Source: Hyalangium minutum (GTDB taxonomy: Bacteria; Myxococcota; Myxococcia; Myxococcales; Myxococcaceae). From it: a DNA stretch of 64,000 nucleotides. The notes under the pieces were generated by a model, which saw nothing but the letters and a program-made list of their open reading frames with translations, was not told where the DNA came from and made no database searches. The translations under genes were made by a program, and so were the position numbers. Numbering within the stretch: position 1 is the first letter of the stretch; each line of letters begins with the position of its first letter. The stretch spans positions 124,001 through 188,000 of the forward strand of contig NZ_JMCB01000002.1 of NCBI RefSeq assembly GCF_000737315.1. Direction: 5' to 3'. This document shows, piece by piece, positions 5,220 to 62,882 of this stretch.

Positions 5220-7358
5220 ATGGAAGTCCTCTCCCTTTCTTCGCGCCGAGCCCTGGGGCTGGGGCTGGCGCTGCTCCTCACCGCCTGTCCGAAGACGACG
5301 ACCCCCGTTCGAGGAGGTGCTGGAGGGACCGGCGAAGGTTCTCAGCAGACCCTCCCGACGAAGCCTCAGGTCGAGGCGAAGAAGGACGCCACGGCGGACG
5401 CGGCGCTGGCCCAGGCCGTGGAGACTGCGGCGCGCACGCCGGACAAGCTGCAGGCGGCCGAGGTGTTGCTCACAGTGCGCAAGACGTACCCGGGCACCAC
5501 TGCCAGCCAGGAGGCGCTCTACCGCGCCGGTGTCCTCTACTTCGAGTCCGAGAACTACGCCGAGGCCCGGAAGACCTTCAACGAGCTGCTCTTCGAGAAC
5601 CCGCTCTACCCGCAGGCGGAGGACGCCAAGTACAAGCTGGCCCTGTCCGCGCTGGAGGTGGGCGCGTACCGGGATGCGTACCAGACGCTCTCCAGCCTCG
5701 CCGAGCGGGCCGAGGGCGCCCAGCGCGAGAAGCTCCTCCAGGAGGCTGCTCGGGCCGCGGAGGGCGCGGGGCTGTTTGGCGTGGCGCTCGACAACGCGGT
5801 GAAGGCGGCCGAGGACGCGAAGACGCCCCAGGAGCAGGCCGCCGCGGTGCAGCGGGTGGAGCAGCTGGTGGAGGGCCGCGCGTCCTTCGTGGATGTGGCC
5901 CGCGTGGTGGAGGGCATGTCGCCCCGGCACCCGGCGTGGCCCGTGCTGACCTTCAAGCTGGCGCGCATCTACTACCACCTGCGCGACTGGACGCGGCTCG
6001 AGGAGACGCTGAACCGCTTCCTGCAGGAGGCCCCCAGCTCCCCGTTCGCCGGACAGGCCCGCGAGCTGCTGAGCCGCGCCACCCGCCGCGTGGAGGTGCG
6101 TCCCAAGACGGTGGGCGTGCTGCTGCCGATGACGGGCCGCTACAAGCCCATCGGTGAGGCGGTGCTGCGCGGTGTGCAGCTGGGGCTGGCGGGCAGTGAC
6201 ATCGAGCTCATCGTCAAGGACACCCAGGGCGAGGTGATGCTGGCGGGGCAGGCGGTGGAGCAGCTGGCGTTCGACGAGGGCGCCATCGCCGTGCTCGGGC
6301 CGCTGCTGCCGGATGACTCGCGCCGCGCGGCGCTGGTGGCCGAGGAGCTCCAGATTCCCCTGCTGACGATGACGCGCGCCGAGGGAATCACGGAGATTGG
6401 CCCGCACGTGTTCCGCAACATGCTGACGAACTCGGCGCAGGCGCAGGCCATCGCGGACTACGCCATGCGCGTGCGCGGCTTCAAGCGCTTCGCGGTGCTC
6501 TACCCGAACATCCCGTACGGCGTGGAGATGGCCAACGGCTTCTGGGACGAGGTGGTGGAGAAGGGCGGCACGGTGCGCGGCGCGGAGAGCTACGCGCACG
6601 ACCAGACGACCTTCACGGACGAGGCCAAGAAGCTGGTGGGCCGCTACTACCTGGAGGACCGCGCCGACTACCTGGAGGGCATGCGCGACATCCAGGGCGA
6701 GAGCCTGGATGCGTTCCGCAAGCGCAAGGCGGTGGAGAAGCTCAAGGGTGGCCTGGAGCCGGTGGTGGACTTCGAGGCCATCTTCATCCCGGACGACTGG
6801 AAGCGCGTGAGCCTGGTGGGCCCGGCGCTCGCGGTGGAGGACATCATCACCAACGCGTGCGACCCGAGGGACTTGGAGCGCATCCGCAAGACGACGGGGA
6901 AGAAGGACCTGAAGACGGTGACGCTGCTGGGCACCAATACGTGGAGCAGCCCGAAGGGCCGCTCGGGGCTGCCGGAGCTCATCGAGCGCGGCGGCAAGTT
7001 CGTCACCTGCTCGGTGTACGTGGACGGCTTCTTCATCGACTCGCAGCGCCCGGCCACGCGCAAGTTCGTCCAGGCCTTCCGCGAGGCCTACAAGGACGTG
7101 GACAAGGATCCGGGGCTGCTGGAGGCCATTGGGTATGACTCGGCGCTGATGCTGCGGCAGCTCATCGACAAGCAGCGCCCGCGCACGCGCAGCGACATGC
7201 GCGAGGCGCTCCTGAACCTGAAGAACTTCGAGGGCGCCACGGGCCGCACCTCGTTCAGCGACAAGCGCGAGGCGGTCAAGCCGCTCTTCATGCTGTCCGT
7301 GGACAACCGGGGCGTGAAGGAGCTCCCGCCGGAGGCTGCTGGAGGCTCGGGCTCATGA
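5220..7358 (+). CDS. LpoA-like penicillin-binding protein activator lipoprotein (TPR region + periplasmic binding type-1 domain)
   Basis: Lipobox LLLTAC, TPR helices, VGVLLPMTGRY...AVLRG and C-terminal FEGATG motif. Start ATG 5205 or 5220. Confidence 0.8.
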   Translation: MEVLSLSSRRALGLGLALLLTACPKTTTPVRGGAGGTGEGSQQTLPTKPQVEAKKDATADAALAQAVETAARTPDKLQAAEVLLTVRKTYPGTTASQEALYRAGVLYFESENYAEARKTFNELLFENPLYPQAEDAKYKLALSALEVGAYRDAYQTLSSLAERAEGAQREKLLQEAARAAEGAGLFGVALDNAVKAAEDAKTPQEQAAAVQRVEQLVEGRASFVDVARVVEGMSPRHPAWPVLTFKLARIYYHLRDWTRLEETLNRFLQEAPSSPFAGQARELLSRATRRVEVRPKTVGVLLPMTGRYKPIGEAVLRGVQLGLAGSDIELIVKDTQGEVMLAGQAVEQLAFDEGAIAVLGPLLPDDSRRAALVAEELQIPLLTMTRAEGITEIGPHVFRNMLTNSAQAQAIADYAMRVRGFKRFAVLYPNIPYGVEMANGFWDEVVEKGGTVRGAESYAHDQTTFTDEAKKLVGRYYLEDRADYLEGMRDIQGESLDAFRKRKAVEKLKGGLEPVVDFEAIFIPDDWKRVSLVGPALAVEDIITNACDPRDLERIRKTTGKKDLKTVTLLGTNTWSSPKGRSGLPELIERGGKFVTCSVYVDGFFIDSQRPATRKFVQAFREAYKDVDKDPGLLEAIGYDSALMLRQLIDKQRPRTRSDMREALLNLKNFEGATGRTSFSDKREAVKPLFMLSVDNRGVKELPPEAAGGSGS

Positions 7359-49823: not shown

Positions 49824-52448
49824 TCACCGAGTGGCGAGAGTGTCCACGTGCTGGCGCAGCTTCGCCTCGTCGCCCATGCAGGCGCTGAGCCCCGGCAGCG
49901 GCTGGGCGGCCTGGGCAATCTTCCCGCGCGTGCGAGGCCCCGCCGCCACGAGCCACGCCACGCCCAGGGCCAGTTCGGCCACCTCGGTCACGCCGGTGAG
50001 GCCGGCGGCGAGCGAGAGCAGCGCCTCCACCGCCTTCTTCACCTGGGCGCCGTGCAGCGGGTGGTTGCTGGTGATGCCCTGGCGCAGCAGCTCCAGCAGC
50101 GCGAGCGCCGTGGCGCGGGCCTGCCGCACCGGCTCCGGTCCCGAGCCCGTGCCCGCCCAGAGCCCGCTGGCGAGCTGCTGGGACAGCAACTCAGTGGCGT
50201 CCGCGCCGTGGGCCGGTGCCTGCTCGGCGGCGGGGAGCGCCTCCTCCATTTCCATGCGGGCCGCGCCTTCGCTGGCACTCAACGCGTCGTCGTCCATGGG
50301 CTCAGGGGCGACACTCCGGCCTTTGACCATGCGCTCCAGCTCGGAGGCGGCCTCGAGGACCCGATCGGCCGCTCGGCGGAGAGCACCGGTGCTCCCATGC
50401 GCGCTGGCCGCCTTCTCCTTCGCGACGATGGGCATGGGGGCCGCGGCCATTGGCGCCGCAGCCGGACGTGCCGGAGCCGGAGGAGGAGGGCTGCCCGGGG
50501 CCGCGCCGCCCACAGCCGCGAAGGAACCGGTGATGGCCTGCTTCTTTTGGGGGGCCGCTCTGTTGCGCGGCATGACCGAGCGGCTCAGGTCCATCGAGTC
50601 CATCTTCGCCTCCTCCTGCTTCGCCGTGCCGAACATGTCCCAGCCCGCGGGAACATTCACGGGGACGACGCGCGTCTCCGGCTGGCCCGAGGCCCGGCGG
50701 TCTCCGGTGCGCTCCTCCACCACCACGAACGAGGTGTACTTGGTGACGATCTGGTGTTGGACGGCGAACTGGACGATGCGCTCCTTCATCCGCTGGGCGC
50801 GGCGCGGATCCACCAACTCCGCGGACTCCCAGGTGCGGATGCGCTCGGCGGCCCACAGCTTCTCCACGGCGGGCCGATCCGACGCCGCCGGGAAGTCCAC
50901 CGGGAGGGTGAGAGAGAAGGACTCCTGCCCCGAGCGGCCCCGGAGTGTCACCTTGCCCTGGCCCGGAGCGGTGTAGCGGCCGAACAGTGTCCACGGCACC
51001 GCGTCCACCAGCGGCGGCAGCTCGGCCGGAGCGAGCTCGGCGCCCGAGACGCCGTCGAAGCTGGCCGTCAGCTCCGTGACACGCGGGGCGAGCGCGCGGG
51101 AGAACTGGGCCACCACCTTGTCATCGATGCGCTCGCCGGGGTGGATGAACTCCACCGCGCCGCCCGTGTTCCGTGCCATGTCCTTGAGCAGCGCGTCGCT
51201 CACGTTGGTGCCGATGCCGAAGGAGTACACGCGCGTCGTCTTCCGCGCCGCGAGCACCGCCTTGAGGATCTCCGCCTCGTTGCCCACCTGTCCGTCCGTC
51301 AGCAGCACCACCACGCCGTCCGGCGCGCCCTGCACGGCGGCCAGCATGGGCTGCAGCAGCTCCGTGCCGCCCGAGGCTTGCAGCGCGGCCACCCACCGGT
51401 CCGCCTGCTCCAGCGTGTGCTGCGTGAAGACAGACGGCTCGTGGGAGAACTTCCGGAAGCTGTTCTCGAAGGCGATGATGTTGAAGCGATCGCCCTCGCG
51501 CAGGTGGCGCAGGCACAGCCGCAGCGCGCCCTGGGCCTGCGGCAGGCTCTCGCCGCCCATGGAGCCCGAGGTGTCCACCACGAACACCACCTCCTGGCGC
51601 TTGGCCGCGCCCGCCATCGCGAGCAGATCCGGCACCACGGTGAGCGCGAAGGTGCCCTCGCCCTCTCCCTTGCGGTGAGTGACGACGGTCGTCAGCGAGG
51701 CGCTCGTGTCATCGCTCCGCACGGTGATGACGAAGTCCCGGTCCAGGGCCACCTCGCCCTTGGCGAACTTCACGCGGACCTTGTGGCCGTCCTTCTCCAG
51801 GGTGAGCGCGTGCGAGGGGCTCTCCACCACCACCGCGCGGCCCAGGTCCACCAGCAGGTCCATCTTCAGGCCGTAGGCCACGTTCCCAATCGGAGGGGTG
51901 ATGCGATCGGCGTCCGGCACCTGGTTCGTGGGGCTGAACGTGCCGTGCCCCGTGCGGTCTCCCTGGCCCGAGCCCGGGATGTAGCGGGGCGCCACCAGCG
52001 TGGGCAGCATCCACCGCACGCTGCCTTCTTCCACTTGGATGGCCTGGAGGAACTCCACCTCGACGAGCGTCTCCTCGTTCGGCAGCAGGTTGCCCACCTG
52101 GGCGGTGAAGACGTTGGGGCGCTCCTGGTCGAGCAGTGCGGCGCCGTGGCCCGCGGTGATGGCGTCGTCATAGTCCTGGAACGCCTTCTCGCGCTCCTTC
52201 ACCACGCCCTGCACCTTGCGGCCGTTGCACTCCATGGAGAAGCCGATGAGCGTCCCGTCCGAGGGGAGCGGGAAGATATAGACGGCCTCTACGGGCCGGC
52301 TCTCGGTGTTGCGGTAGCGCTGGCGCACGCGCACCCGCGCATGACCGCCGAGCAGCTCACCGGTGACTTCCACGCCCTGCAGAGGGATCTGCGCGCCGCT
52401 CCGCATGAACAGCCCGCACTTCAACTGGCCTGCCGTCTCGATGGTCAT
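49824..52448 (-). CDS. VIT + vWA domain protein
   Basis: VIT (VRQRYRN..PVEAVYIFPLP), MIDAS DTSGSM, LTDG, SFGIG, TKYTSFVVVE. Confidence 0.92.
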   Translation of the reverse strand: MTIETAGQLKCGLFMRSGAQIPLQGVEVTGELLGGHARVRVRQRYRNTESRPVEAVYIFPLPSDGTLIGFSMECNGRKVQGVVKEREKAFQDYDDAITAGHGAALLDQERPNVFTAQVGNLLPNEETLVEVEFLQAIQVEEGSVRWMLPTLVAPRYIPGSGQGDRTGHGTFSPTNQVPDADRITPPIGNVAYGLKMDLLVDLGRAVVVESPSHALTLEKDGHKVRVKFAKGEVALDRDFVITVRSDDTSASLTTVVTHRKGEGEGTFALTVVPDLLAMAGAAKRQEVVFVVDTSGSMGGESLPQAQGALRLCLRHLREGDRFNIIAFENSFRKFSHEPSVFTQHTLEQADRWVAALQASGGTELLQPMLAAVQGAPDGVVVLLTDGQVGNEAEILKAVLAARKTTRVYSFGIGTNVSDALLKDMARNTGGAVEFIHPGERIDDKVVAQFSRALAPRVTELTASFDGVSGAELAPAELPPLVDAVPWTLFGRYTAPGQGKVTLRGRSGQESFSLTLPVDFPAASDRPAVEKLWAAERIRTWESAELVDPRRAQRMKERIVQFAVQHQIVTKYTSFVVVEERTGDRRASGQPETRVVPVNVPAGWDMFGTAKQEEAKMDSMDLSRSVMPRNRAAPQKKQAITGSFAAVGGAAPGSPPPPAPARPAAAPMAAAPMPIVAKEKAASAHGSTGALRRAADRVLEAASELERMVKGRSVAPEPMDDDALSASEGAARMEMEEALPAAEQAPAHGADATELLSQQLASGLWAGTGSGPEPVRQARATALALLELLRQGITSNHPLHGAQVKKAVEALLSLAAGLTGVTEVAELALGVAWLVAAGPRTRGKIAQAAQPLPGLSACMGDEAKLRQHVDTLATR

Positions 52449-52455
52449 CTGGCTT

Positions 52456-52959
52456 CTACCTTTCCTCTGACTGCTCGATGAGGGCGCGCACGCGTTCGGC
52501 GAGCGCCCGGGTCTTCTCGTCTGCGGTGTCCGCGAGGTGCAGCTCCAGCCCCGGCGCCAGCTCCCACCGCCGGTAGCCTGTCACGGGCAACTGTCGCCCT
52601 GCTTGCACGGGCCCCGGCGTGGACACTCCGGAGGCCGGGGAGGGTTCCGACAGTGCCGTCGGAGCCGGTGGCAAGATGTCAGTGGGCACCTGGGCCTCGG
52701 ACAGCGCCTTCAGCTCCTCCGGGCTCAGCCGGGTCAGCTCCACCTGAATGGCATCGAGCGGCAGGAAGCGGGCCTGCAGCACGCGGATGGCCTTGAGCCG
52801 CTGCAGGTGCTCCTCGCCGTACACGGTGTCCGGCCCCTTGAAGGGCGGAGCGGGGAGCAGCCCTCGCTGGACGTAGTAGCGCACCGTGCGGGGGGAGACC
52901 CCTGCCTCGGCGGCCAGCTCGGCCAGCTTCCACTCGGTCTGTGTCTTCGTCGGGCTCAC
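52456..52959 (-). CDS. MerR-like helix-turn-helix regulator
   Basis: LAELAAEAGVSPRTVRYYVQRGLLP...Y...HL.RL; start reassigned to GTG 52959. Confidence 0.85.
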   Translation of the reverse strand: MSPTKTQTEWKLAELAAEAGVSPRTVRYYVQRGLLPAPPFKGPDTVYGEEHLQRLKAIRVLQARFLPLDAIQVELTRLSPEELKALSEAQVPTDILPPAPTALSEPSPASGVSTPGPVQAGRQLPVTGYRRWELAPGLELHLADTADEKTRALAERVRALIEQSEER

Positions 52960-52961
52960 GA

Positions 52962-53005
52962 GACAGACAGTAAGACCCGACAGTTTAACTGTCAAGAAGA
53001 CAGTT
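52962..53005 (-). promoter_or_regulatory. Sigma70 promoter with overlapping palindromic operator
   Basis: Minus strand TTGACA (52995-52990), 17 bp, TACTGT (52972-52967); perfect palindrome GACAGTT-T-AACTGTC at 52979-52993; extra GACAG half-sites at 52962, 52966 and 52999. Confidence 0.75.
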
Positions 53006-53056
53006 GGTGGAATCTTGCCACTGGCGAGAAGGCCTCCCGGCGAGCCTCCCTCGGCC

Positions 53057-53803
53057 TCACCGCCCCATTCCTAGCGAGCGCAGCAAATCCAGGGGGATGG
53101 GGATGACGGTCTGGTTGCCGCTGTTGCTGATCTCCACCAGCGTCTGCAGGTAGCGGAGCTGGAGCGAGGAGGGGTTTCGAGAGAGCACATCGGCGGCCTG
53201 GGCGAGGCGCTCGGCAGCCTGGTGCTCGCCCTCGGCGGCGATGACCTTGGCGCGGCGCTCGCGCTCGGCCTCGGCCTGGCGGGCGATGGCGCGCTGCATC
53301 TCCACCGGCAGGTCCACGTTCTTCACCTCCACGTTGGAGACCTTGATGCCCCACGGGCCCGTGTGCGCGTCGAGCACCTGCTGGATCTCCTTGTTGACGC
53401 GGTCGCGCTGGGAGAGCAGGTCGTCCAGCTCCACCTGCCCGAGGATGGCGCGCAGCGTGGTCTGCGCCAGCTGGCTGGTGGCGTAGAGGTAGTCCTCCAC
53501 CTGGAGCACGGCCTTGTCGGCCTGGATGACGCGGAAGTAGACGACGGCGCTCACCTTCACGCTGACGTTGTCCTTGGTGATGACGTCCTGGGGGGGCACG
53601 TCCCGTGCCACGGTGCGCAGATCGATGATGACCATGCGCTCCACGAAGGGGATGAGCCAGCGGAAGCCGGCGCGCTTGAGCCCCACATAGCGGCCGAGCC
53701 GGAAGACGACTCCGTTCTGGTACTCGGTGACGATGCGGACGCCGGAGATGAAGAGGAAGAAGAGGAAGACCACGGGAATCAACAGGCCAAGGAGCTCGCT
53801 CAT
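53057..53803 (-). CDS. Slipin/stomatin-like SPFH protein
   Basis: [54 protein letters not shown]. Confidence 0.95.
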
Positions 53804-55152
53804 GTCTTCACCTCGTCGACGTACAGGGTGAGGCCCTCCACGCGGCGCACCACCACGGGGGTTCCGGCTTGGATGGGAGAGGCGGAGACGGCCCGCCAGC
53901 GCTCGCCGTGGACGAACACCTCGCCCCCCTCGGAGGAGACGGGCCCGAGCGTGGTGCCGCGTTCCCCTGGCAGCCCCGCGTCTCCGGCAAGCTGCGGCAG
54001 ATGGCGGGTCTGCGCGCTGCGGAAGGCGAGGAACACGGCGAAGCCGGCGACCACGATGGCCGTGGGGAGCACCAACGGCAGGGGCACGGACGCGCGCGAG
54101 GAAGGGTCGACGAACCATTCCGGGTCGAAGCGATCCACCAGCAGCACGCCTCCGAGGATGAGCAGCAGCGCCCCGCCAGCGCCGAGCAGGCCGCTGGTGA
54201 CGAAGATCTCCGCGATGAGCATGCCGATGCCCAGGAAGAGGAGCAGGACGGCGCCGGTGCGCACGGGCAAGGCCGAGGAGGCCAGCAGGGCGAGCACGAA
54301 GGCCACGATGCTGATGAGGCCCGGGGCGAAGACGCCCGGATGGGTCAGCTCCACCATGAGCCCGAGCGCGGCCACGAGGAAGAGCATGTAGACGATGGCG
54401 GGCTCCGCGAGCCCATGGAGCAGGCGCTGGGAGAGACTCGGCGAGAGCTCCACCACCTGGGCCTCGCGCGTGGCGAGCTGCCGAGGCCCATCCGCTGTCT
54501 CGACGCGCCGGCCATCCGCCCATGCGAGGAACGCCTCCTCCGAGGAGGCCACCGTCTCCACGACGTGCAGCTCCACGGCGCGGTCGGCGGGGACGCTGAC
54601 GCTCTCACGCACGGCGGTGGCGGCCCACTCGGCGTTGCGGCCGCGCTGGCGGGCGATGCTCTCGGCGAAGGCGGCGGTGTCGTTCTCGATCTTCCGGGCC
54701 ATGGCCTCGCCCGCCTGTTGGGGATCTTCCCCGGTCAGTCCGAGGACGGGGTGCGCCGCGCCAATGTTCGTTCCCGGCGCCATGGCGGCCAGGTGCGATG
54801 CGAGGGTGACGAAGACGCCCGCGCTCCCCGCCCGGGCGCCCGAGGGCCCCACCCAGACCAGCACCGGCACGCGCGAGGCGAGGAAGGCCCGGACGATGGC
54901 GCGGGTGGACTCCAAGGAGCCGCCGGGCGTGTCCACCCGGACGAGCAACGCGGCATGGCCCGCCTCCTCCGCCTTTCGGACGCACTCGGTCAGATAGGCG
55001 CCCGAGCCGGCATCCACGATGCCTTCGAGCACACAGCGGGACACGATGGGCCTGTCACGAGGGGACTCGGCGAGGACGCCGCTCGCCAGCATCAGCCCGA
55101 GCAGCGGGAGGACACGGGCCCTCCGCCAGGCCATGCGAGTCCCGGAGTTCAT
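53800..55152 (-). CDS. nfeD: NfeD-family membrane serine protease (long form)
   Basis: [24 protein letters not shown]-terminal OB-fold G.V..HGERW; ATGA overlaps with both neighbours. Confidence 0.92.
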
Positions 55153-56441
55153 GCGGGAGCGCTCGGTTGGGAGGCGAGGGCCAGCCCTCGAGGCGCCAGG
55201 GGCCTGTCGTGGGCCAGTGCATCCATCATTCGCAGTTCGTCGAGCAGCAGCCGGGGGAAGAGGAAGTTCTGGCGGACGTGCTCCCGGCCCCGCTCGCCCA
55301 GACACTGGGCCTCTTGTGGGTGGCGCAGCAGGTGGAGCACGGCTTCGGCGCACTCCTCCACGTTGTCCACGAGGATGCCGCCCGTGCCCTCGGGCATCTG
55401 GATCGGGATGCCGCCGGCACGTCCGGCGACGACGGGGGTGCCCTTCCACAGTGCCTCGGACACGACGAGCCCGAAGCCCTCGCGGATGGACTTCTGGATG
55501 ACGACGTCCGAGAGCGACTGGAAGGCGTTGACCTCCATGTTTCCCACGCCCACCAGGTTGGTGAAGATGTGGATGCGATTGTCGCCTGTGGTGACGTCGC
55601 GGATCTGCCGGTAGATGTCCCAGCCTTCGGGATCATCCAGGGCGAGCGAGCCCACCATGGCCAGCTGCAGCTCAGGGATGTGGGCACGCACGCGCCGGTA
55701 TGCGGCGATGACGCCCAGGGGGTCCTTCCACGGATCGAAGCGGCTGATCTGGGTGACGAGAGGCCGGCTCAGACGCACGCCGAGCCACTCGAGCAACTGG
55801 CGCGCAAGGTCCACCGGGAGGGGGAGGTTCTTGGGGCTGAGCGGATCAATGGCCGGCGAGTGGATGGCCACGCGGCCGATGGGGAACCTCGGGGGGATGA
55901 ACTCGGGCAGGGTGAAGATGGCGGCGTCGTAGGGGTAGAGGAACGGGCGGAGGAACTCCCAGGCCTCGGGGTTGGGGCTGGAGGTGTCGATGTGACAGCG
56001 CCAGATCCATCGCGCGTCCTGGCGGTCGGCGAGCATGGCCAAGGCGGCCGGCTGCGGATCGTGGACGACGATGAAGTCATAGTCCGTGGACAGGTTGCGG
56101 GCGTTGAGCTGCGAGTGGGCGAGGTACGTGGCCTTGTCCGTCTCGGAGAAGCCGCCGGGGGCTCCCTGAAGACCGTTGTGGAGACGCTTGGTGACCTGAA
56201 AGAAGGCCTGGTCGCCCCGGATGAGCTGCCAGTCGGCCACCAGACCTAGATCATTGAGCAGCGCAACGCCCGAACGGAGGAGTTCCGAGACTCCGCCTCC
56301 GTACGGCGTGGCGTTGAGGTGCAGGACGCGGGCGCCGCGCAGGCGCTCGGCCAGATGGAGCACCTCCTCGATGTGCTCCTCGGGGGCAATGCCCCTGTAC
56401 GCGGAGAACGAGCGCTTCCCGAGATCGACGAGGTCCAGCAT
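55149..56441 (-). CDS. GT4 glycosyltransferase, trehalose synthase (TreT)-like
   Basis: [56 protein letters not shown]. Confidence 0.88.
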
Positions 56442-56635
56442 GGAGCCCTCCGGGACGAAGTTGGGTCTGGAGCCACCGCGCGACAGCCGGGCCGAAGGGC
56501 AAGCCCGGGGCGGGGGGCGCAGGGCGGGGGCTTGCCCGGCTGGGGGCCGCATCCGATGCCGAACGGATGCGCTCGCAGCGCATTGCCTGAAGTGAGGCCG
56601 GTTCCTAGCGTCCTCGGAGGCCCTTAGGAGGACTT

Positions 56636-56827
56636 ATGCGTCGTGCCGTACTCATCGCTGTCTCTTTGGCTGCTCTTTCCACTGCCTGCCGGACGACCCA
56701 GCCGCAGGGCGCGGACAACCAGGTGCCCATCGACAACCCAGGGCAGGAGTCCATCCAGACGGTCCCTGCGGAGCCCCCAGGCCCTGGCAGCCCCATCACT
56801 GCCCCGGTGGACGCTCCCAAAGGGTAG
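56636..56827 (+). CDS. Small Pro-rich lipoprotein
   Basis: AGGAGG RBS, MRR + hydrophobic core + LSTAC lipobox. Confidence 0.7.
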   Translation: MRRAVLIAVSLAALSTACRTTQPQGADNQVPIDNPGQESIQTVPAEPPGPGSPITAPVDAPKG

Positions 56828-56854
56828 AAGCCACTGAGCCGAAGCAGCCGCGCG

Positions 56855-57748
56855 CTACTGGAAGATGTCCGAGCGGGCGGCCTCGGCGATGGCGACGACA
56901 GCGGGGTGACGCAGCCGGCGCTCGACGGTGATGGCGTAGAAGCAGTTCTCGATCTCGTCGGTGCGGCCGATGACGGTGACGTCGAACTGGCGGACGACCT
57001 CGGCCTCGATGACGGAGGGCATGGCGAAGACGCCGAGCCCGCGCTGACCGAAGGCCTTGAGGAGGGCGCTGTCGTCGAAGTCGCCGACGATGGTGGGGCG
57101 CACGCCCTTGCCATCGAACCAGACGTCGAGCGCGTGGCGGACGGCGCTGGCCTCGGAGGGCATGAGCATGGGGGCGCCGTGGAGGGAGCGGGGGAAGTCC
57201 TTCTTGAGGTGGCCGTGGATGGCCGCAGCGAAGAAGGACACCCCGCACTTGCCGAGCAGGTGGTTGAAGGCTCGGACACTGACGGGCTCTGAGCCGGGGG
57301 CATCGGCGAGCACGACGTCCAGCTCATGCAGGGCGAGCGAGGCGAGGAGCTGGGGGAGGGGGCCTTCGCGGCAGATGATGCGCAGGGGGCCGACGTCGAG
57401 GGCGGGCTGGAGGAGCCGCTCGGCGACGACCTTGGGGACGACGTCAGCGACGCCGACCTGAAGGCGGAGTTGCTGGCCGGAGGGGAGGCCGCTGACGACG
57501 TTCTTGAGCTCGTTGCCGAGGCGGAAAATCTCATCGGCGTAGCGCATGACGGTGCGGCCGACGTCAGTGAGGACGAGCTTGCGACCCTGTCGCTCGAAGA
57601 GCTTGTGGCCGAGCGCCTCCTCGAGGAGCTTGATCTGGCTGCTGATGGTGGGCTGGGCGAGGTGGAGTTCTTCGCCGGCCTTGGCGATGGTGCCGGCCCG
57701 GGCCACGGTCCAGAAGTAGAGCAGGTGGTGGTAATTGAGCCAGCTCAA
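56855..57748 (-). CDS. nhaR: LysR-family transcriptional activator NhaR
   Basis: MSWLNYHHLLYFW..AR.G, QPTISSQI..LE, DDSALLKAFG..G.G.F. Confidence 0.9.
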   Translation of the reverse strand: MSWLNYHHLLYFWTVARAGTIAKAGEELHLAQPTISSQIKLLEEALGHKLFERQGRKLVLTDVGRTVMRYADEIFRLGNELKNVVSGLPSGQQLRLQVGVADVVPKVVAERLLQPALDVGPLRIICREGPLPQLLASLALHELDVVLADAPGSEPVSVRAFNHLLGKCGVSFFAAAIHGHLKKDFPRSLHGAPMLMPSEASAVRHALDVWFDGKGVRPTIVGDFDDSALLKAFGQRGLGVFAMPSVIEAEVVRQFDVTVIGRTDEIENCFYAITVERRLRHPAVVAIAEAARSDIFQ

Positions 57749-57922
57749 GCTTTCCTCAAGGGGTCGGGACGAACGTTCGATGCTCGGGTAGGTAAGGGGT
57801 TCCGTACTGGGGGTGACGTGGCGGGCTGGCCGAAGGGTGGGCGTACGAGGGTAGGAGGGGTGTAGGGTCTAGGCGAGTGGCCGGGCGGCCGGGCGTTAAA
57901 GGCAGGAAGGATCAGAACGCGC

Positions 57923-57951
57923 TTGACGTAGGAGAGGAGTCCCCGTAAATC
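57923..57951 (+). promoter_or_regulatory. Sigma70-type promoter of tRNA-Phe
   Basis: TTGACG-17 bp-TAAATC followed by a GC-rich discriminator. Confidence 0.65.
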
Positions 57952-57976
57952 GGCGCTGCTTTGCGCGGTGACACCC

Positions 57977-58049
57977 GCCCAGGTAGCTCAGTCGGTAGAG
58001 CAGGGGACTGAAAATCCCCGTGTCGGTGGTTCGATTCCGCCCCTGGGCA
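57977..58049 (+). tRNA. tRNA-Phe: tRNA-Phe (GAA); CCA end not encoded
   Basis: Acceptor GCCCAGG/CCTGGGC, D-arm AGCTCAGTCGGTAGAGC, anticodon stem GGGGA-CTGAAAA-TCCCC, T-loop GGTTCGATTCC. Confidence 0.97.
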
Positions 58050-58069
58050 CAAGAAGCTGAAGAAATTTC

Positions 58070-58105
58070 AGGGCCTTGAACTTCGGTTCAAGGCCCTTCT
58101 TTTTT
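58070..58105 (+). terminator. Rho-independent terminator (possibly bidirectional)
   Basis: 12-bp perfect stem AGGGCCTTGAAC-TTCG-GTTCAAGGCCCT followed by TCTTTTTT. Confidence 0.88.
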
Positions 58106-58194
58106 GCCCGCCGAGAGGAAGGCCTGTGCCGGCGTGGGGCTCCAGGGAACTGCTCTGCACCCGTCCACACCCTCCACAGGCCTCCCATCCTCGG

Positions 58195-58368
58195 CTAGTA
58201 GTTAGGCTCGCACAGCGAAGGCACGTTGATGCATTCGCAGCAGATATCCAACTCAGAGACCTCGGTCCCGAGGGTCGCCGACATCTCCAGGCGAGACTCC
58301 AGCTCGGTCAGCTGAAACTCCTCCATCAGCTCATCGGTTGCGACAGACACGGGCTTCTTTGCGGCCAT
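58195..58368 (-). CDS. 57-aa putative RiPP precursor peptide MAAKKPVSVATDELMEEFQLTELESRLEMSATLGTEVSELDICCECINVPSLCEPNY
   Basis: Translated by hand; GGAGG RBS 7-8 nt upstream; 32 nt after the acyltransferase stop; below the ORF-track cutoff. Confidence 0.75.
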   Translation of the reverse strand: MAAKKPVSVATDELMEEFQLTELESRLEMSATLGTEVSELDICCECINVPSLCEPNY

Positions 58369-58400
58369 GGTGTTTCCTCCGGTGGTACGACAGTCAAGGT

Positions 58401-59561
58401 TCAGGGGCTCCCGGCGCTCGCCAGCGCGCCTACGTCGAGCAGCTTGCGGATCCGCGCATTCGACAAGTCCAGCGCGGCCCGTGCGGAAGGGCGCTCAACG
58501 GCTGCGCGGAACACGTCAGCTGCCTCCTGGTCGAGCATGAGGCAGCTGTGGCGGGCCTTGTCGAGCAGGACCGGCTGCTCCCCATACACCAGCAGCGCGA
58601 ACCGGCCGGTATCGGCGCGCAGCTCCGCGGCGCCCTCCTCGACCGTCCGCGCGGCGGGACGCACATCCGTGTTTCGCTGGAGATAGCGCTCGACGTAAAG
58701 CCAGCCTTCCCACTGCCCCAGCGCATCGGCCACGGACTGTTCCAGCAGGCGGTACAGCGCCTGGGTTGTGCTGGCGGCGTACTGCTCACGATCGTCTCCG
58801 GACGGGACAATCGGCGGATGAAAGGTCAGCGACAGGGAATGATCGGCGTCGCGCCGGCACACCACGGGCACCACGGGTACGCCTGAGAGGTGGCTCAGAT
58901 AGGCGATTCCAGCACGCGCCATGAGCTGCTGGCCGAAGAACTCCACGGGCACCATGCTGCCGTTGTCCTTGTTGTTACCGACTCCCGCGTTGCCGTCGAT
59001 GTAGAGGACGAGCGACGCGCCGCGCCTGAGGGCACGCAGGCCGAACAGGAGGCTGTTGCGGTCTTGGGCGTTGACCGTGCGGAGCGTGCCCGTCCAGCCC
59101 CGGGCCCGCGCGGCATCCTGCACCCCCTCGAGGATGTCCTGCCCCTGCTTGTTCAGCGTATTCCCAGCCAGGAACAACACGCAGTCGGTTCCGGCGCGCA
59201 TCAGGAAGTGGAACAAGTGCCGATACGAACCCGCGTGGTAGGTGCAGAAGATGTGGCTGCCCGCCGTCCGTCCGTCCAAGAAGATGCCAGCCAGATCACG
59301 CAGGCGCGTCGTCTGCACCAGGTCGTATTGCTTCTGGTCGAGCACCGCCATGCGCTGCTGGAAGATCACCTCCGCGATGACCGCCTCCCGGCGCTCGCGC
59401 GGCAGCCGCGGGAAGAAGTAACGCAGGTTGGCGTCGCACAGGTGGTAGGCATTGTTGAACGCATCGGACTGGCGCGGCGCACTGACGACACCGTCCAAGG
59501 CGCGGCGCAGCGCCACGATGAGCTCGTCTGCCTTGCGAGCATAGTGTGCGTCCACGCTCAT
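58401..59561 (-). CDS. LpxL/LPLAT-like acyltransferase with C-terminal RRE/PqqD-like extension
   Basis: TYHAGSY, LVLYIDGN, VEFFG, GIAYLSHLSGVPVVP, QWEGW parallel LpxL blocks; ATGA overlap with the upstream gene fixes the start at 59561. Confidence 0.8.
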   Translation of the reverse strand: MSVDAHYARKADELIVALRRALDGVVSAPRQSDAFNNAYHLCDANLRYFFPRLPRERREAVIAEVIFQQRMAVLDQKQYDLVQTTRLRDLAGIFLDGRTAGSHIFCTYHAGSYRHLFHFLMRAGTDCVLFLAGNTLNKQGQDILEGVQDAARARGWTGTLRTVNAQDRNSLLFGLRALRRGASLVLYIDGNAGVGNNKDNGSMVPVEFFGQQLMARAGIAYLSHLSGVPVVPVVCRRDADHSLSLTFHPPIVPSGDDREQYAASTTQALYRLLEQSVADALGQWEGWLYVERYLQRNTDVRPAARTVEEGAAELRADTGRFALLVYGEQPVLLDKARHSCLMLDQEAADVFRAAVERPSARAALDLSNARIRKLLDVGALASAGSP

Positions 59562-60862
59562 GCGGACATCCCCTGAGAGTTGGAGGCGGCACGTGCCGGG
59601 GGAGCGATGAGCGCCTGCCGCACGAGCCGCACGCCCCGTCCCAGCGTGGACAGAACCACCATCGCCGAGAACAGCATGCCGGCCAGGTACGCCAGCACCA
59701 TCACCACGCTCCCGGAGACAGCGACAAGCGCCTCGAGCGGCTCCGTGCTCGCAAACCGGGCCAGGACGGCGCCCAGCAGCTGCGGCAACGACGTCACAAG
59801 GACCCAGGTGGTGCGCGCGGCGAACACCGCGAAGGTGGCGAAGAACACAGTGGACGCCAGCGCATAGACGGCCAGCGCCACCCGGGAGCCCGCGAGGGGC
59901 GGCGGTCCCTTGTCCCGGCGTCCCATCACGAGGGAGGCCGCGCGTGTCAGCACGTTCGCGCCCCAGGCACGCGCCTGGTCGCGCAGGTTGGGCAGGCGGA
60001 ACAGGTCGGAGTAGACCCAATAGCCATCGAAACGGAAGAACGGATTGAGCGTCACGAAGAGTGTGGTCAAGCTGGCGCCCATGAAGGCGGCAATTGCAGC
60101 GCTCTGGGTTGCCAGTTGCACGGGCGCCGCCAGCGCCGTGACGATCAGCTGGAAATAGACCCCGCCGAGGTTGACACGCATCCGGCCTGCGCGCGGCAGC
60201 CGCCACGCCTCGGTGACATTGCAAAACAGCACGGGGAAGACCAGATACAGACCGATTCCAATTTCGGCGGGCTCGGCGCCGGAGTAGCGCGAGGCCGCCG
60301 CGTGCCCGAGCTCATGGAACGCGAGCGCGCTGAACAGCAGGACGTAGAACAGCAGGGCGTCGCCCAGCGTCATGTTGAAGGTGGTGACCGCTACGCGCAC
60401 GCTGCTGAGCTGGTAAGGCGTGGCCAGCAACCACCCGCCCAGCAGCACGGCGCACGCCAGCAGCGTCGTGATGAGCGCTCGCGGCGCGAACAGGAAGGTG
60501 AACGGGGAACAGGCGCGCGCCACGGTCTCAGGACCGGCCAACTGCCGCGCGAAGAACACGTAGGGAGAGTGGTTGCTGGCCGCTGGCGCGGCTTTCTTGT
60601 CGGTGGAGACTAACCCCGCGGGTATCAACTGGGTTTCAATGACCGAGCGCACCTGCTCGGCGGTGAACTTCACGTCGCCTTCATTCAAGCGCGCCACGAT
60701 CGCGTCGAGCGACGACTCGCGCTCCAGACACTCGAGCAGCCGCGCCAGCCTTTCGGAGCCATGAAAGGCGCGGCGCCCGACGAAAATGCAGTACCGGCGG
60801 CCGCTCTGCGGATCATCCGTCTTGGACAAAGACAGTGCGTCGGTCAGGTAGTATCGATCCAA
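59558..60862 (-). CDS. M50 (site-2 protease) membrane metalloprotease with N-terminal RRE/PqqD-like domain; TTG start probable
   Basis: HELGH zinc motif, GLYLVFPVLFCNVTEAW, LNPFFRFDGY third-ligand motif, multiple TMs. Confidence 0.82.
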   Translation of the reverse strand: MDRYYLTDALSLSKTDDPQSGRRYCIFVGRRAFHGSERLARLLECLERESSLDAIVARLNEGDVKFTAEQVRSVIETQLIPAGLVSTDKKAAPAASNHSPYVFFARQLAGPETVARACSPFTFLFAPRALITTLLACAVLLGGWLLATPYQLSSVRVAVTTFNMTLGDALLFYVLLFSALAFHELGHAAASRYSGAEPAEIGIGLYLVFPVLFCNVTEAWRLPRAGRMRVNLGGVYFQLIVTALAAPVQLATQSAAIAAFMGASLTTLFVTLNPFFRFDGYWVYSDLFRLPNLRDQARAWGANVLTRAASLVMGRRDKGPPPLAGSRVALAVYALASTVFFATFAVFAARTTWVLVTSLPQLLGAVLARFASTEPLEALVAVSGSVVMVLAYLAGMLFSAMVVLSTLGRGVRLVRQALIAPPARAASNSQGMSA

Positions 60863-60893
60863 GCGGGACTCTGGCTGAGAGGGTCTTGTTCCG

Positions 60894-60920
60894 ACTATAT
60901 AGTAAAAGTTCAGAATAACG
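60894..60920 (-). promoter_or_regulatory. AT-rich patch with candidate -10 box for the peptide operon
   Basis: Palindrome ACTATATAGT (60894-60903) containing TATAGT/TACTAT about 30 nt upstream of TTG 60862; no clear -35. Confidence 0.35.
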
Positions 60921-61218
60921 CGAATCCAGTTCTGTCGCGGATGGGCTGAGCGCGTAGCACCGCTCGCCGATGCGCCCGACCAGGAACTGCGCCGGCGGCT
61001 TCGCGCTCGTCGCCAGGACACGCCCCCCGCTAGCACCGACGTGCGCGTGCATGTGGAGCAGCCGCGTCGCCTTGGCCGCCACGCTCGCGCTGCAGCTGAC
61101 GTCTCCCTCAGGGCTTGGAGTCGATGACCGCGCCCGCCTGGGCTCCTTGCAGGTGGTGGCGCAGCGGGATCCGAGGTATTAGGTTGGATGTAAGAGACCC
61201 AACCTATTGGGGTAGATT

Positions 61219-61812
61219 ATGGACCTGAAGGCCGTCATCGCGCTCGAGCGGGCAGGCATGGACCCGGCTCACCCGGAGCGCCTGTGGGTGCCCACCGCGC
61301 TCGGCGAGCAGGGCCGGGTGGTGCCCCTGGACCAGGACCTGCCTGTCCCCGTCATGGACGACGGACACCGCGTGGTCTGGCTTCCTCTCGAGCCGTTCTC
61401 CCGGCTCTGGACGGGCTCGGCGGTGGCCCCGGCTCTCTCCCGCGCCTCCCCGCCCGAGTACGAGCCCTTCTTCATCCTCCTTGAGGCCACGGCCGCCGAG
61501 TACTGCGATGCCACCGGTCGTCCCGAGCGCGACAGGGAGTTCGAGCGCCTCTACCGGCAGCTGCGTCGTCGGCCGGACGGCGTGGATCCCAACCCCTTGT
61601 TTTCCTACCTGCGCGCCGCGGCCCGGCTCTACCTCTCCCTGCGGGATGTGAGCCGCGCCGAGTTCGAGTCTGTGGCCGACCGCCTGCGCCTCTCGGCCAG
61701 GACCTTCAGCACCCGGATCGACAGCACCAACTACCACCACTTCGTGCTCGAGGAGTTCTTCCACCCCACGGGACCGCTCCTCACCACGGGCTGGTCGGGA
61801 GGGCTCTCATGA
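61219..61812 (+). CDS. Hypothetical protein
   Basis: Clean ORF with ATGA overlap to the next gene. Confidence 0.65.
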   Translation: MDLKAVIALERAGMDPAHPERLWVPTALGEQGRVVPLDQDLPVPVMDDGHRVVWLPLEPFSRLWTGSAVAPALSRASPPEYEPFFILLEATAAEYCDATGRPERDREFERLYRQLRRRPDGVDPNPLFSYLRAAARLYLSLRDVSRAEFESVADRLRLSARTFSTRIDSTNYHHFVLEEFFHPTGPLLTTGWSGGLS

Positions 61813-62882
61813 GCGAGTACCAGTATTACGAGTTCCGGGCCGTGGACCGGCCGCTCACCCAGCGGGAGCGGGCCGAGCTTCGTGCACTCTCTACCCGCGC
61901 CAACATCTCCGCGTACCACTTCTCCAACGTCTATCACTGGGGCAGTTTCAAGGGCTCCCCGGACGAGATGGTGGAGCGCTACTTCGATGCCCACCTCTAT
62001 GTGGCGAACTGGGGCGAGCGCCGGCTCGTGCTCCGTCTTCCTGCCCGGCGCTTCGACCTGCAGCGCGCCAGGCCCTACCAGGAAGGCCGCCGCACCGCGG
62101 TGCAGAGGAAGGGCGACCACGTCATGCTTCGCTTCGAGCTCGACGAAGCCTGGTCCGAGGACGTCCAGGGGGAAGGGTGGCTCACCTCCCTCCTGCCCCT
62201 TCGCGAGGAGCTTCTCTCGGGAGATCTGCGCTCGCTCTATCTCGGGTGGCTGGCACAGGCCGCGCTGGGGCAGTTGAGTGCGGACGACGAGGAGCCGCCC
62301 GTTCCCCCAGGGCTAGGCTCCCTCTCCTCAGCGCTCACCGCGCTCGCGGACTTCCTGCTCATCCCTCCCGAGCTGTTGGAGGTGGCCGCTCGGACCAGTG
62401 CCGCTGAAAAGCCGGTGCCGCGCGAGGAGTTGGAGACGTGGGTTCAGGCGCTACCCGCGCTGGAAAAGGATGCCCTGCTGGTGCGGTTGATCGACAAGGC
62501 CGGGGTGGCCCCTGGCCGAGTCGCGGAGAAGGCCATTCCTCCCCGGAGGCTGGTGGGCGCACTGCTCCGGGAAGCCGTAGCGCTCCAAAAAGCCAAGGAG
62601 CGGCGGGAACAGGAGCGCCAGGTCGCGGCTCGGGAGAAGGAACTCGAGGCGCTCGCGGCCCAGGGCTCCGCTGCTTGGGGGCGGGTGGATCAGCTCTTCT
62701 CCAGCCGTCGCCCCACGGATCATGCGGCCGGTGTGAGGCTCCTCGTGGACCTGAGAGAGGTCGCGCGCCGGAAGGGGACGGAGGACGCGTTCTCCCGCCG
62801 CTTGGGCCAGCTCCGCGAGCGCAATGCCCGAAGAGCCGGGCTGATCTCCCGCATGGACAAGGAAGGCCTGCACGCACCCTGA
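61809..62882 (+). CDS. Conserved hypothetical protein (MSEYQYYEF... family, usually near SWIM/helicase genes)
   Basis: MSEYQYYEFRAVDRPLT, YFDAHLYVANWG, GDLRSLYLGWL motifs recalled from this family. Confidence 0.7.
   Translation: MSEYQYYEFRAVDRPLTQRERAELRALSTRANISAYHFSNVYHWGSFKGSPDEMVERYFDAHLYVANWGERRLVLRLPARRFDLQRARPYQEGRRTAVQRKGDHVMLRFELDEAWSEDVQGEGWLTSLLPLREELLSGDLRSLYLGWLAQAALGQLSADDEEPPVPPGLGSLSSALTALADFLLIPPELLEVAARTSAAEKPVPREELETWVQALPALEKDALLVRLIDKAGVAPGRVAEKAIPPRRLVGALLREAVALQKAKERREQERQVAAREKELEALAAQGSAAWGRVDQLFSSRRPTDHAAGVRLLVDLREVARRKGTEDAFSRRLGQLRERNARRAGLISRMDKEGLHAP

Follow-up and report, generated by a model that had tools for sequence, protein, structure and literature searches.

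This locus raises the question of whether a short ORF on the minus strand of the Hyalangium minutum genome encodes the precursor of a modified ribosomal peptide, and what its neighboring enzymes would do to that peptide. The ORF lies at 58195..58368 of the window (the whole stretch of DNA that was analyzed, 64,000 nucleotides long), and its direct translation is MAAKKPVSVATDELMEEFQLTELESRLEMSATLGTEVSELDICCECINVPSLCEPNY, that is, 57 aa followed by a stop codon. A Shine-Dalgarno GGAGG, also read directly from the sequence, is located at 58376..58380 on the minus strand, 7 nt upstream of the ATG at 58368, and the peptide gene begins 32 nt past the stop of the upstream acyltransferase gene. The original prediction had described a 57-aa precursor-like peptide with a GGAGG ribosome-binding site and the Cys pattern CCxC-x6-C, and all of this was found as described, with the strand being minus. 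The gene is the last of three minus-strand genes that form a cassette, in the order protease, acyltransferase, and peptide. We consider it fairly probable that the cassette product is a ribosomal peptide precursor that is fatty-acylated at the Cys43/Cys44 dyad and then loses its leader.

Length or existence of the ORF alone was weak evidence for a gene, because short ORFs are abundant in DNA with 69% GC, and 104 ORFs of at least 40 aa overlapped the 50-64 kb part of the window. This abundance would favor a chance, untranslated ORF, but the comparative data contradict it, and we regard such an ORF as a practically negligible explanation. The composition of the ORF (GC3 of 0.81 versus GC2 of 0.38) and the GGAGG at the correct spacing both stand against chance, and so does the conservation of the gene at the same position in other genera and phyla. 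The leader motif EFQLTELESRLEM (residues 17-29; 58282..58320, minus strand) was near-invariant as EFQLTELExRLEM in eight homologues, and CCEC (Cys43, Cys44, Glu45, and Cys46; 58231..58242, minus strand) was present in seven of them. Inspection of the codons block by block showed that variation within these two blocks was only synonymous, with swaps such as GAG/GAA, CTG/TTG/CTC/TTA, TGC/TGT, and CGC/AGA. Block-wise inspection was used instead of dN/dS of the whole peptide (0.35-1.18), which hypervariability in the N-terminus, linker, and tail made uninformative. When the family profile was searched against the six-frame translation of the window, the peptide ORF was the sole match with an E-value of 4.5e-20, and the next best was 0.97. 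An Rfam scan of 57500..59000 returned nothing above threshold except a tRNA, which means that the region is not explained by any known RNA. The protein collection already contains an identical 57-aa product (P0001), the homologue in Cystobacter fuscus carries the NCBI name “hypothetical protein,” and a 58-aa gene has been called at the corresponding position in Archangium. No NCBIfam or Pfam family was found for the window peptide and 12 relatives. Judged from these sequence comparisons, the ORF is a real gene that is selected at the protein level, and it is very likely that this gene is functionally linked to the acyltransferase and the protease.

The leader motif is constant against a variable N-terminus, linker, and C-terminal tail, and the CCEC motif in the core is also conserved, which is unusual; we propose that modification takes place at its Cys43-Cys44 dyad. 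Cys53 (58210..58212, minus strand) completes the pattern as its fourth Cys, and a Cys 3-8 residues past CCEC is kept in the homologues of Myxococcota, Lysobacteraceae, Oxalobacteraceae, and Tahibacter, with one locus (L008) missing it. No Lys or Arg occurs beyond residue 26 of the window peptide, and the last 28 residues hold neither of them, so the earlier statement that the putative core has no Lys was borne out. The core is acidic and Cys-rich, with four Cys within 11 residues, and the C-terminus reads ...CEPNY. The ELE-x-R-x-E-M/L part of the leader motif was also seen in Bacteroidota peptides. Its R-x-E-M half was found only in loci with a protease gene, while the Lysobacteraceae peptides have ELETQLKAL instead and the Spirosoma peptides do not have it at all. 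This distribution hints that the protease reads the R-x-E-M half, and the F-x-L part or other features may serve the acyltransferase. Cleavage between RLEM and the following Ser, as first suggested, is possible.

The first gene of the cassette (59558..60862, minus strand, with the start at TTG 60862 or GTG 61021/61036) encodes an HExxH site-2-type intramembrane metalloprotease with about 6 hydrophobic segments and, at the N-terminus, a soluble domain of roughly 90 residues. The motifs HELGH and NPFFRFDG are located at 60302..60316 and 60023..60046, respectively, and the stop codon of the gene overlaps the ATG of the acyltransferase gene. Profile searches matched the protease to NF041824, the model of the daptide HExxH protease (E-value 1.8e-34, 119.5 bits, cut-off 300, profile positions 27-358 of 379), and at lower scores to NF058609 of YydH/LiaK (E-value 1.7e-10, 41 bits, cut-off 225) and to M50 of Pfam (PF02163, E-value 5.2e-05). 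The similarity to the daptide peptidase, which is fused to a RiPP recognition element (RRE), includes the N-terminal part. Alignment of the protease N-terminal domain with the acyltransferase C-terminal domain by hhalign gave no similarity (probability 0.2), so these two domains are not detectable paralogues. In C. fuscus NCWS (L001, 7465-8768), the protease is encoded in two frames that overlap near the 3′ end, and the C-terminus of the protein diverges from all homologues, which points to a frameshift or an assembly error.

The middle gene (58401..59561, minus strand) encodes a protein of 386 aa, to which an LpxM/PatA-like fold with an extra C-terminal domain was assigned from Pfam, AlphaFold2, and Foldseek. 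The protein passed the gathering score of PF03279 (E-value 1.6e-11, 44.4 bits, cut-off 22.3), its AlphaFold2 model had a mean pLDDT of 83.8, and Foldseek matched this model to LpxM (5knk, E-value 9.5e-11) and PatA (5f2z, E-value 2.2e-10), both with a probability of 1.0. These alignments span 255-304 of the 386 residues, so the extra C-terminal domain lies outside them. Identity was 83% to the Archangium enzyme and 82% to the Cystobacter enzyme, and no hydrophobic segment or N-terminal membrane helix was found in the protein. The NCBIfam equivalog models of LpxL/PatA gave only 15-30 bits against cut-offs of 209-491, the best being 29.5 against 384. A PDB sequence-profile search with the whole protein returned nothing relevant, so that sequence gave no alignment of the catalytic His to a solved structure. 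The presumed catalytic residue is His109 in the motif YHAGSYR (59220..59240, minus strand), where H109, S112, Y113, and R114 were invariant among 25 homologues. From its position after a beta strand in the model, H109 is presumed to be the His of the HX4D/E motif, and the position of the acid is occupied by the invariant Arg114 (H-A-G-S-Y-R).

The C-terminal domain of the acyltransferase (residues 308-386; 58404..58640, minus strand) was predicted by AlphaFold2 of the domain alone to consist of four beta strands followed by two helices, with a pLDDT of 86.1. Foldseek found nothing for it at an E-value of 1e-3 or below, and the top matches were winged-helix domains, among them many leader-binding RREs. 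TbiB1 with its leader (5v1v_A) gave an E-value of 0.024, a probability of 1.0, and TM values of 0.60/0.55, and 6jx3_B, ThcOx, SuiB, CteB, and PbtF (8t19) were also in the top list, where E-values were weak throughout (0.02-1.2) and the best match was the winged-helix domain of NO66, a non-RiPP protein. A PDB sequence-profile search with the domain returned only spurious armadillo-repeat matches. The predicted structure is thus suggestive of an RRE-like/winged-helix domain.

When the peptide itself was the query, a single relative was found, that of C. fuscus with 71% identity, where the same three-gene order stands between different flanks. The acyltransferase as query yielded 32 clusters of the protein collection and 59 loci in species-representative genomes, and exact look-up added 4 loci. 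Protease, acyltransferase, and one or two peptides were found together in Archangium violaceum, Tahibacter amnicola, two metagenome/MAG contigs, and an Oxalobacteraceae MAG (L003). Peptides of these close relatives have the form ...EF(Q/R)L(T/N/S)ELExRLEM...(Y/I/G)CCEC...C, and the CCEC-type cassette is conserved in at least six loci. Family peptides adjoin the acyltransferase in 60 of 65 loci (two duplicate pairs and the window itself included) from three phyla, with one to five peptides per locus, all on the strand of the enzyme. Neither HMM nor CC scan found a peptide at L004, L007, L032, L040, and L059. The idea of a precursor-like peptide tied to its neighboring enzymes was therefore supported, since the leader is kept beside the homologous acyltransferase and HExxH protease in Myxococcota, Pseudomonadota, and Bacteroidota, which is the opposite of the missing leader conservation that the original prediction had named as refuting. 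A profile built from 18 peptides retrieved 105 clusters from a collection of 5.8 billion proteins, none of which had a Pfam domain, and the names, where given, were “hypothetical protein” with one exception. This exception is P0181 (= L063 7454-7627), a CCEC-type precursor that carries the JGI label “capsular polysaccharide biosynthesis protein,” apparently an annotation error. The acyltransferase family itself comprised 402 clusters at 50% identity (E-value ≤ 1e-30).

Other members of the family differ in the peptide and in the accompanying genes. The Lysobacteraceae peptides, with the form ...EFRLSELETQLKALLP...YYCCECVGNPxCP, adjoin the acyltransferase, and no protease gene was present within 6 kb at the Lysobacteraceae and Spirosoma loci. 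Arcicella, Saprospiraceae, Lewinella, and Chitinophagales have three to five tandem peptides with the leader ELExR(L/F/Q)E(M/L/T) and with R-C or K-C cores, and examples of such Bacteroidota cores are ARCSGNKVE, ERCSNRCNGNDV, and AKCKSEEK. A second and larger subfamily was found in about 40 loci of Spirosoma, Fibrisoma, and Cytophagales (within L009-L060), where one to three tandem peptides lie directly upstream of the enzyme, at roughly 5340-5900 of each locus. These peptides have the form MKKQFSIK...AAKxESxNLLKF...CC...FSL, in which CC is invariant except in one, and there was neither a protease nor an arginase gene near the loci. Peptides of 91-94 aa were seen in Myroides odoratus (L038, 4274-8371), L039, and L020; they contain ...ARCSNRCNGNDVDVE... 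followed by a 30-residue tail, next to them are genes for an arginase-like protein and the acyltransferase, and the HExxH protease is replaced by an S41 C-terminal processing peptidase. Tandem acyltransferase paralogues were found at L025 (5704-8052) and L027 (5899-8207), and fused double-length forms of 829-854 aa were found in P0041, P0048, and P0165. Tandem or fused acyltransferases may mean two acylation events, and some cores have two dyads (CRCKC, KKCNNC).

The position of the modification was approached through the dyad. A [C/R/K]-C dyad was present in nearly all family peptides, K-C variants included, and its first residue changed together with the gene content of the locus. All nine loci with an arginase-family gene had R-C or K-C peptides, whereas 49 of the 51 peptide-bearing loci without an arginase gene had C-C, the exceptions being L025, which is truncated by the end of its contig, and L054 with S-C; these counts come from related genomes and amount to about 4-5 independent lineages per side. 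No other result told more about the chemistry. In the selidamides, a peptide arginase converts Arg to ornithine, which is then acylated. The association of R/K-C with arginase and of C-C with its absence therefore suggests that the residue before the invariant Cys carries or gains a nucleophile, which would be a thiol, an epsilon-amine, or a delta-amine. Since a nucleophile would always stand at this position, we place the modification at the Cys43-Cys44 dyad, most likely at Cys43. Alternatively, the acyl group could go first to the invariant second Cys and, in the Orn/Lys types, move later by an S-to-N shift, or this Cys could be a recognition element. The original prediction had offered Cys thiols, Ser/Thr hydroxyls, or the new N-terminal Ser as acyl acceptors; of these, the Cys dyad alone is conserved across the family, and the lack of conservation at Ser, at Thr, and at the position that follows RLEM makes O-acylation or N-terminal acylation less likely.

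The nature of the acyl group was suggested by Bacteroidota clusters. In a Saprospiraceae MAG (L047, 641-13026; also L048 and L057), a ketosynthase gene and four to five tandem peptides with ELE leaders and ARC cores are clustered with genes for an HExxH protease, an arginase-family protein, the acyltransferase, an AMP-ligase, a PPTase-like protein, a FabA-like protein, a second ketosynthase, and a DUF2306 membrane protein. This cluster looks like a RiPP/fatty-acid hybrid, and that it has fatty-acid genes of its own speaks for a fatty acyl group as what the acyltransferase transfers.

Taking these data together, we infer a pathway, and the inference extends to the acylation itself, its donor and acceptor residue, the sequence of events, and where the leader is cleaved. 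In this pathway, the leader (roughly residues 1-29, with the motif given above) would dock the unmodified peptide on both enzymes, that is, on the C-terminal winged-helix RRE-like domain of the acyltransferase and on the N-terminal domain of the protease. The acyltransferase would then move a fatty acyl group from acyl-ACP or acyl-CoA onto the Cys43-Cys44 dyad, most likely onto the thiol of Cys43, where relatives have Lys or an Arg that is converted to ornithine. Lipidation would tether the peptide to the membrane, and the intramembrane protease would then separate it from its leader, releasing an anionic lipopeptide with four Cys and about 15-28 residues. That the peptide is the precursor of an acylated RiPP is in our view probable. 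An acyl group attached as a thioester to Cys43/Cys44 falls somewhat short of an even chance, and it counts against this proposal that a lipid linked by a thioester would be chemically labile and that few natural products would be expected to carry one.

Within the same RiPP pathway, the acyl group could sit elsewhere, on a Ser/Thr hydroxyl or on the new N-terminal amine as in goadvionins, lipolanthines, and lipoavitides. Ser and Thr are present in the core, LpxM and PatA are O-acyltransferases, and the known N-terminal lipidations of RiPPs come after proteolysis. But no Ser/Thr position is conserved across the subfamilies in the way that the [C/R/K]-C dyad is, and the Spirosoma-type loci (about 40) hold acyltransferase and peptide without a nearby protease gene. 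The leader-binding-like domain of the acyltransferase also speaks against it, since an enzyme with such a domain suggests the uncut precursor as its substrate, and we consider this alternative unlikely. Another explanation accepts the peptide as real and has the acyltransferase-like protein do no fatty acylation of it, so that the protein would transfer an acyl group that is short or unusual, serve as a scaffold, or have a lipid as its substrate, with the peptide only regulating the protease or serving as its substrate. The replacement of the acid of HX4D/E by Arg, the scores of all NCBIfam LpxL/PatA models far below their cut-offs, and the window cassette without fatty-acid genes would fit this. 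However, the coupling of enzyme and peptide extends across three phyla, His109 is invariant, the Bacteroidota clusters have their own fatty-acid synthesis genes, and the correlation with arginase suggests that the peptide provides a nucleophile, so we find this explanation decidedly unlikely.

The peptide might also be a Cys-rich unlipidated bacteriocin or a metal-binding peptide, in which the Cys residues form disulfides or a metal site and the protease acts as leader peptidase and exporter-like partner. The spacing of the four Cys, the anionic core, and a leader/protease logic like that of daptides are in accordance with it. But it would leave unexplained why the most constant partner of the peptide is an acyltransferase with a leader-binding-like domain and why C-C switches to R/K-C together with arginase, and the cassette is without an exporter or immunity gene, which makes it an improbable reading. 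We keep fatty acylation at the dyad as the preferred reading. Tentatively, and with more doubt than confidence, we further propose an undescribed RiPP class in which an acyltransferase of the LpxL/PatA fold with a built-in leader-recognition domain lipidates a [Cys/Lys/Orn]-Cys dyad, members of the CC type would carry S-fatty-acyl (thioester) Cys, and a daptide-type RRE-site-2 protease would remove the leader.

Compared with known systems, the leader and protease resemble those of daptides. In the daptide paper, the MpaA precursors have the leader motif ELExMEAP, an N-terminal RRE domain is fused to an intramembrane site-2 protease (MpaP), and the leader is cut off by an intramembrane peptidase that depends on the RRE; daptides end in an invariant Thr, and their core abounds in branched aliphatic residues. 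The window peptide has a similar acidic ELE-type leader (ELESRLEM), its protease is likewise an HExxH membrane protease with a soluble N-terminal domain that matches NF041824, and its relatives often have several tandem precursor genes. Unlike daptides, the window peptide ends in Tyr and has no aliphatic helical core, and the tailoring enzyme is an acyltransferase. It is not a daptide itself, as the C-terminal Thr and the genes for oxidative decarboxylase (MpaB/C), aminotransferase, and methyltransferase are lacking and the protease reached 119.5 bits where 300 are needed.

Selidamides (kamptornamide, phaeornamide, and nostolysamides) are RiPPs that are fatty-acylated on the side chains of Lys or Arg-derived ornithine by GNAT enzymes. 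The likeness lies in the leader-dependent side-chain lipidation of a ribosomal peptide that is proposed here, and in the Bacteroidota relatives that pair an arginase-family gene with R-C cores, as selidamides pair a peptide arginase with acylated ornithine. A Lys/Arg candidate acceptor occurs in these relatives, with R-C/K-C and the arginase gene, and not in the window peptide, where the conserved candidate is Cys. The window peptide was rejected as a selidamide, because no GNAT family was found by Pfam/NCBIfam in the seven ORFs of 55149..62882, the acyltransferase has the LpxM/PatA fold instead, and the core of the peptide has no Lys or Arg.

The acyltransferase shares its fold and Pfam family with LpxL/LpxM/PatA over residues 1 to about 300, and the invariant His of YHxGSYR is placed like their catalytic His. 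Its identity to them is about 15-17%, about 80 residues at its C-terminus form an additional domain, an N-terminal membrane helix is lacking, and the gene context consists of peptides rather than lipid A or PIM genes. It is not an orthologue of these enzymes, given the low equivalog scores, the extra domain, and the invariant Arg114 in place of the motif acid.

Several other classes were also excluded. The HExxH membrane protease is distantly related to YydH/LiaK of epipeptides (YydF), but the score for NF058609 was 41 against 225, the cassette has no radical-SAM epimerase, and the precursor is unrelated. Pfam scans of chosen ORFs in the 49-64 kb part found no LanB/LanC, LanM, LanKC, or LanL, which excluded a lanthipeptide. 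The N-terminus MAAKKPVSVATDELMEE has neither a hydrophobic h-region nor a lipobox and the Cys residues are at positions 43-53, so the peptide is not a bacterial lipoprotein. Lipidation of Cys with a membrane-anchored product is known from eukaryotic S-palmitoylation by DHHC enzymes and from bacterial lipoprotein lipidation by Lgt/Lsp/Lnt. The likeness to these processes is the proposed Cys (di-Cys) target, and as the enzymes are unrelated it is an analogy only. In our proposal, the system works like a hybrid, in which leader and peptidase follow the daptides, side-chain lipidation follows the selidamides, and the acyltransferase fold comes from envelope-lipid synthesis.

A full-text literature search, in which subscription journals were outside the coverage, found no published description of this system, and no curated family for this peptide system was found in NCBIfam or Pfam. 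The only RiPP lipopeptides named in a 2026 paper are GNAT-modified ones (selidamides, lipolanthines, goadvionins, lipoavitides, and aphotorhaptins). If our proposal is true, a second, unrelated acyltransferase fold would lipidate ribosomal peptides, which would widen the enzymology of RiPP lipidation and possibly provide genetically encoded lipidation tools with Cys as well as Lys/Orn chemistry. The S-fatty-acyl Cys product would then be a bacterial natural-product counterpart of S-palmitoylation, with the window as the founding myxobacterial example. The family is not small: its enzymes form about 400 clusters and its peptides 105 or more, distributed among Myxococcota, Pseudomonadota, and Bacteroidota, and the minimal three-gene cassette of the window is the simplest system for testing the chemistry.

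The surroundings of the cassette comprise a tRNA-Phe gene, a LysR regulator, trehalose synthase, and two ORFs of unknown function. About 100 nt 3′ of the peptide gene, a 12-bp GC-rich hairpin (58070..58097) resembles a terminator on both strands by consensus match, and tRNA-Phe (GAA) at 57977-58050 on the plus strand is convergent on the cassette, so that the hairpin would be a terminator common to both. The two ORFs of 197 aa (61219-61812) and 357 aa (61809-62882) lie on the plus strand, divergent from the cassette, and overlap by ATGA; they had no Pfam/NCBIfam family and no counterpart in the related loci. The flanking genes of the window were not conserved at the Cystobacter, Archangium, Tahibacter, metagenome/MAG, and Oxalobacteraceae loci. 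The flanks differ in every genome examined, and the cassette may move as a unit. Further along the minus strand (49824-55449) there is an unrelated neighborhood with a VIT/VWA protein, a MerR regulator, and an SPFH/NfeD pair, and beyond this pair, the trehalose synthase gene (55149-56552) is followed by that of the NhaR-like LysR regulator (56855-57748).
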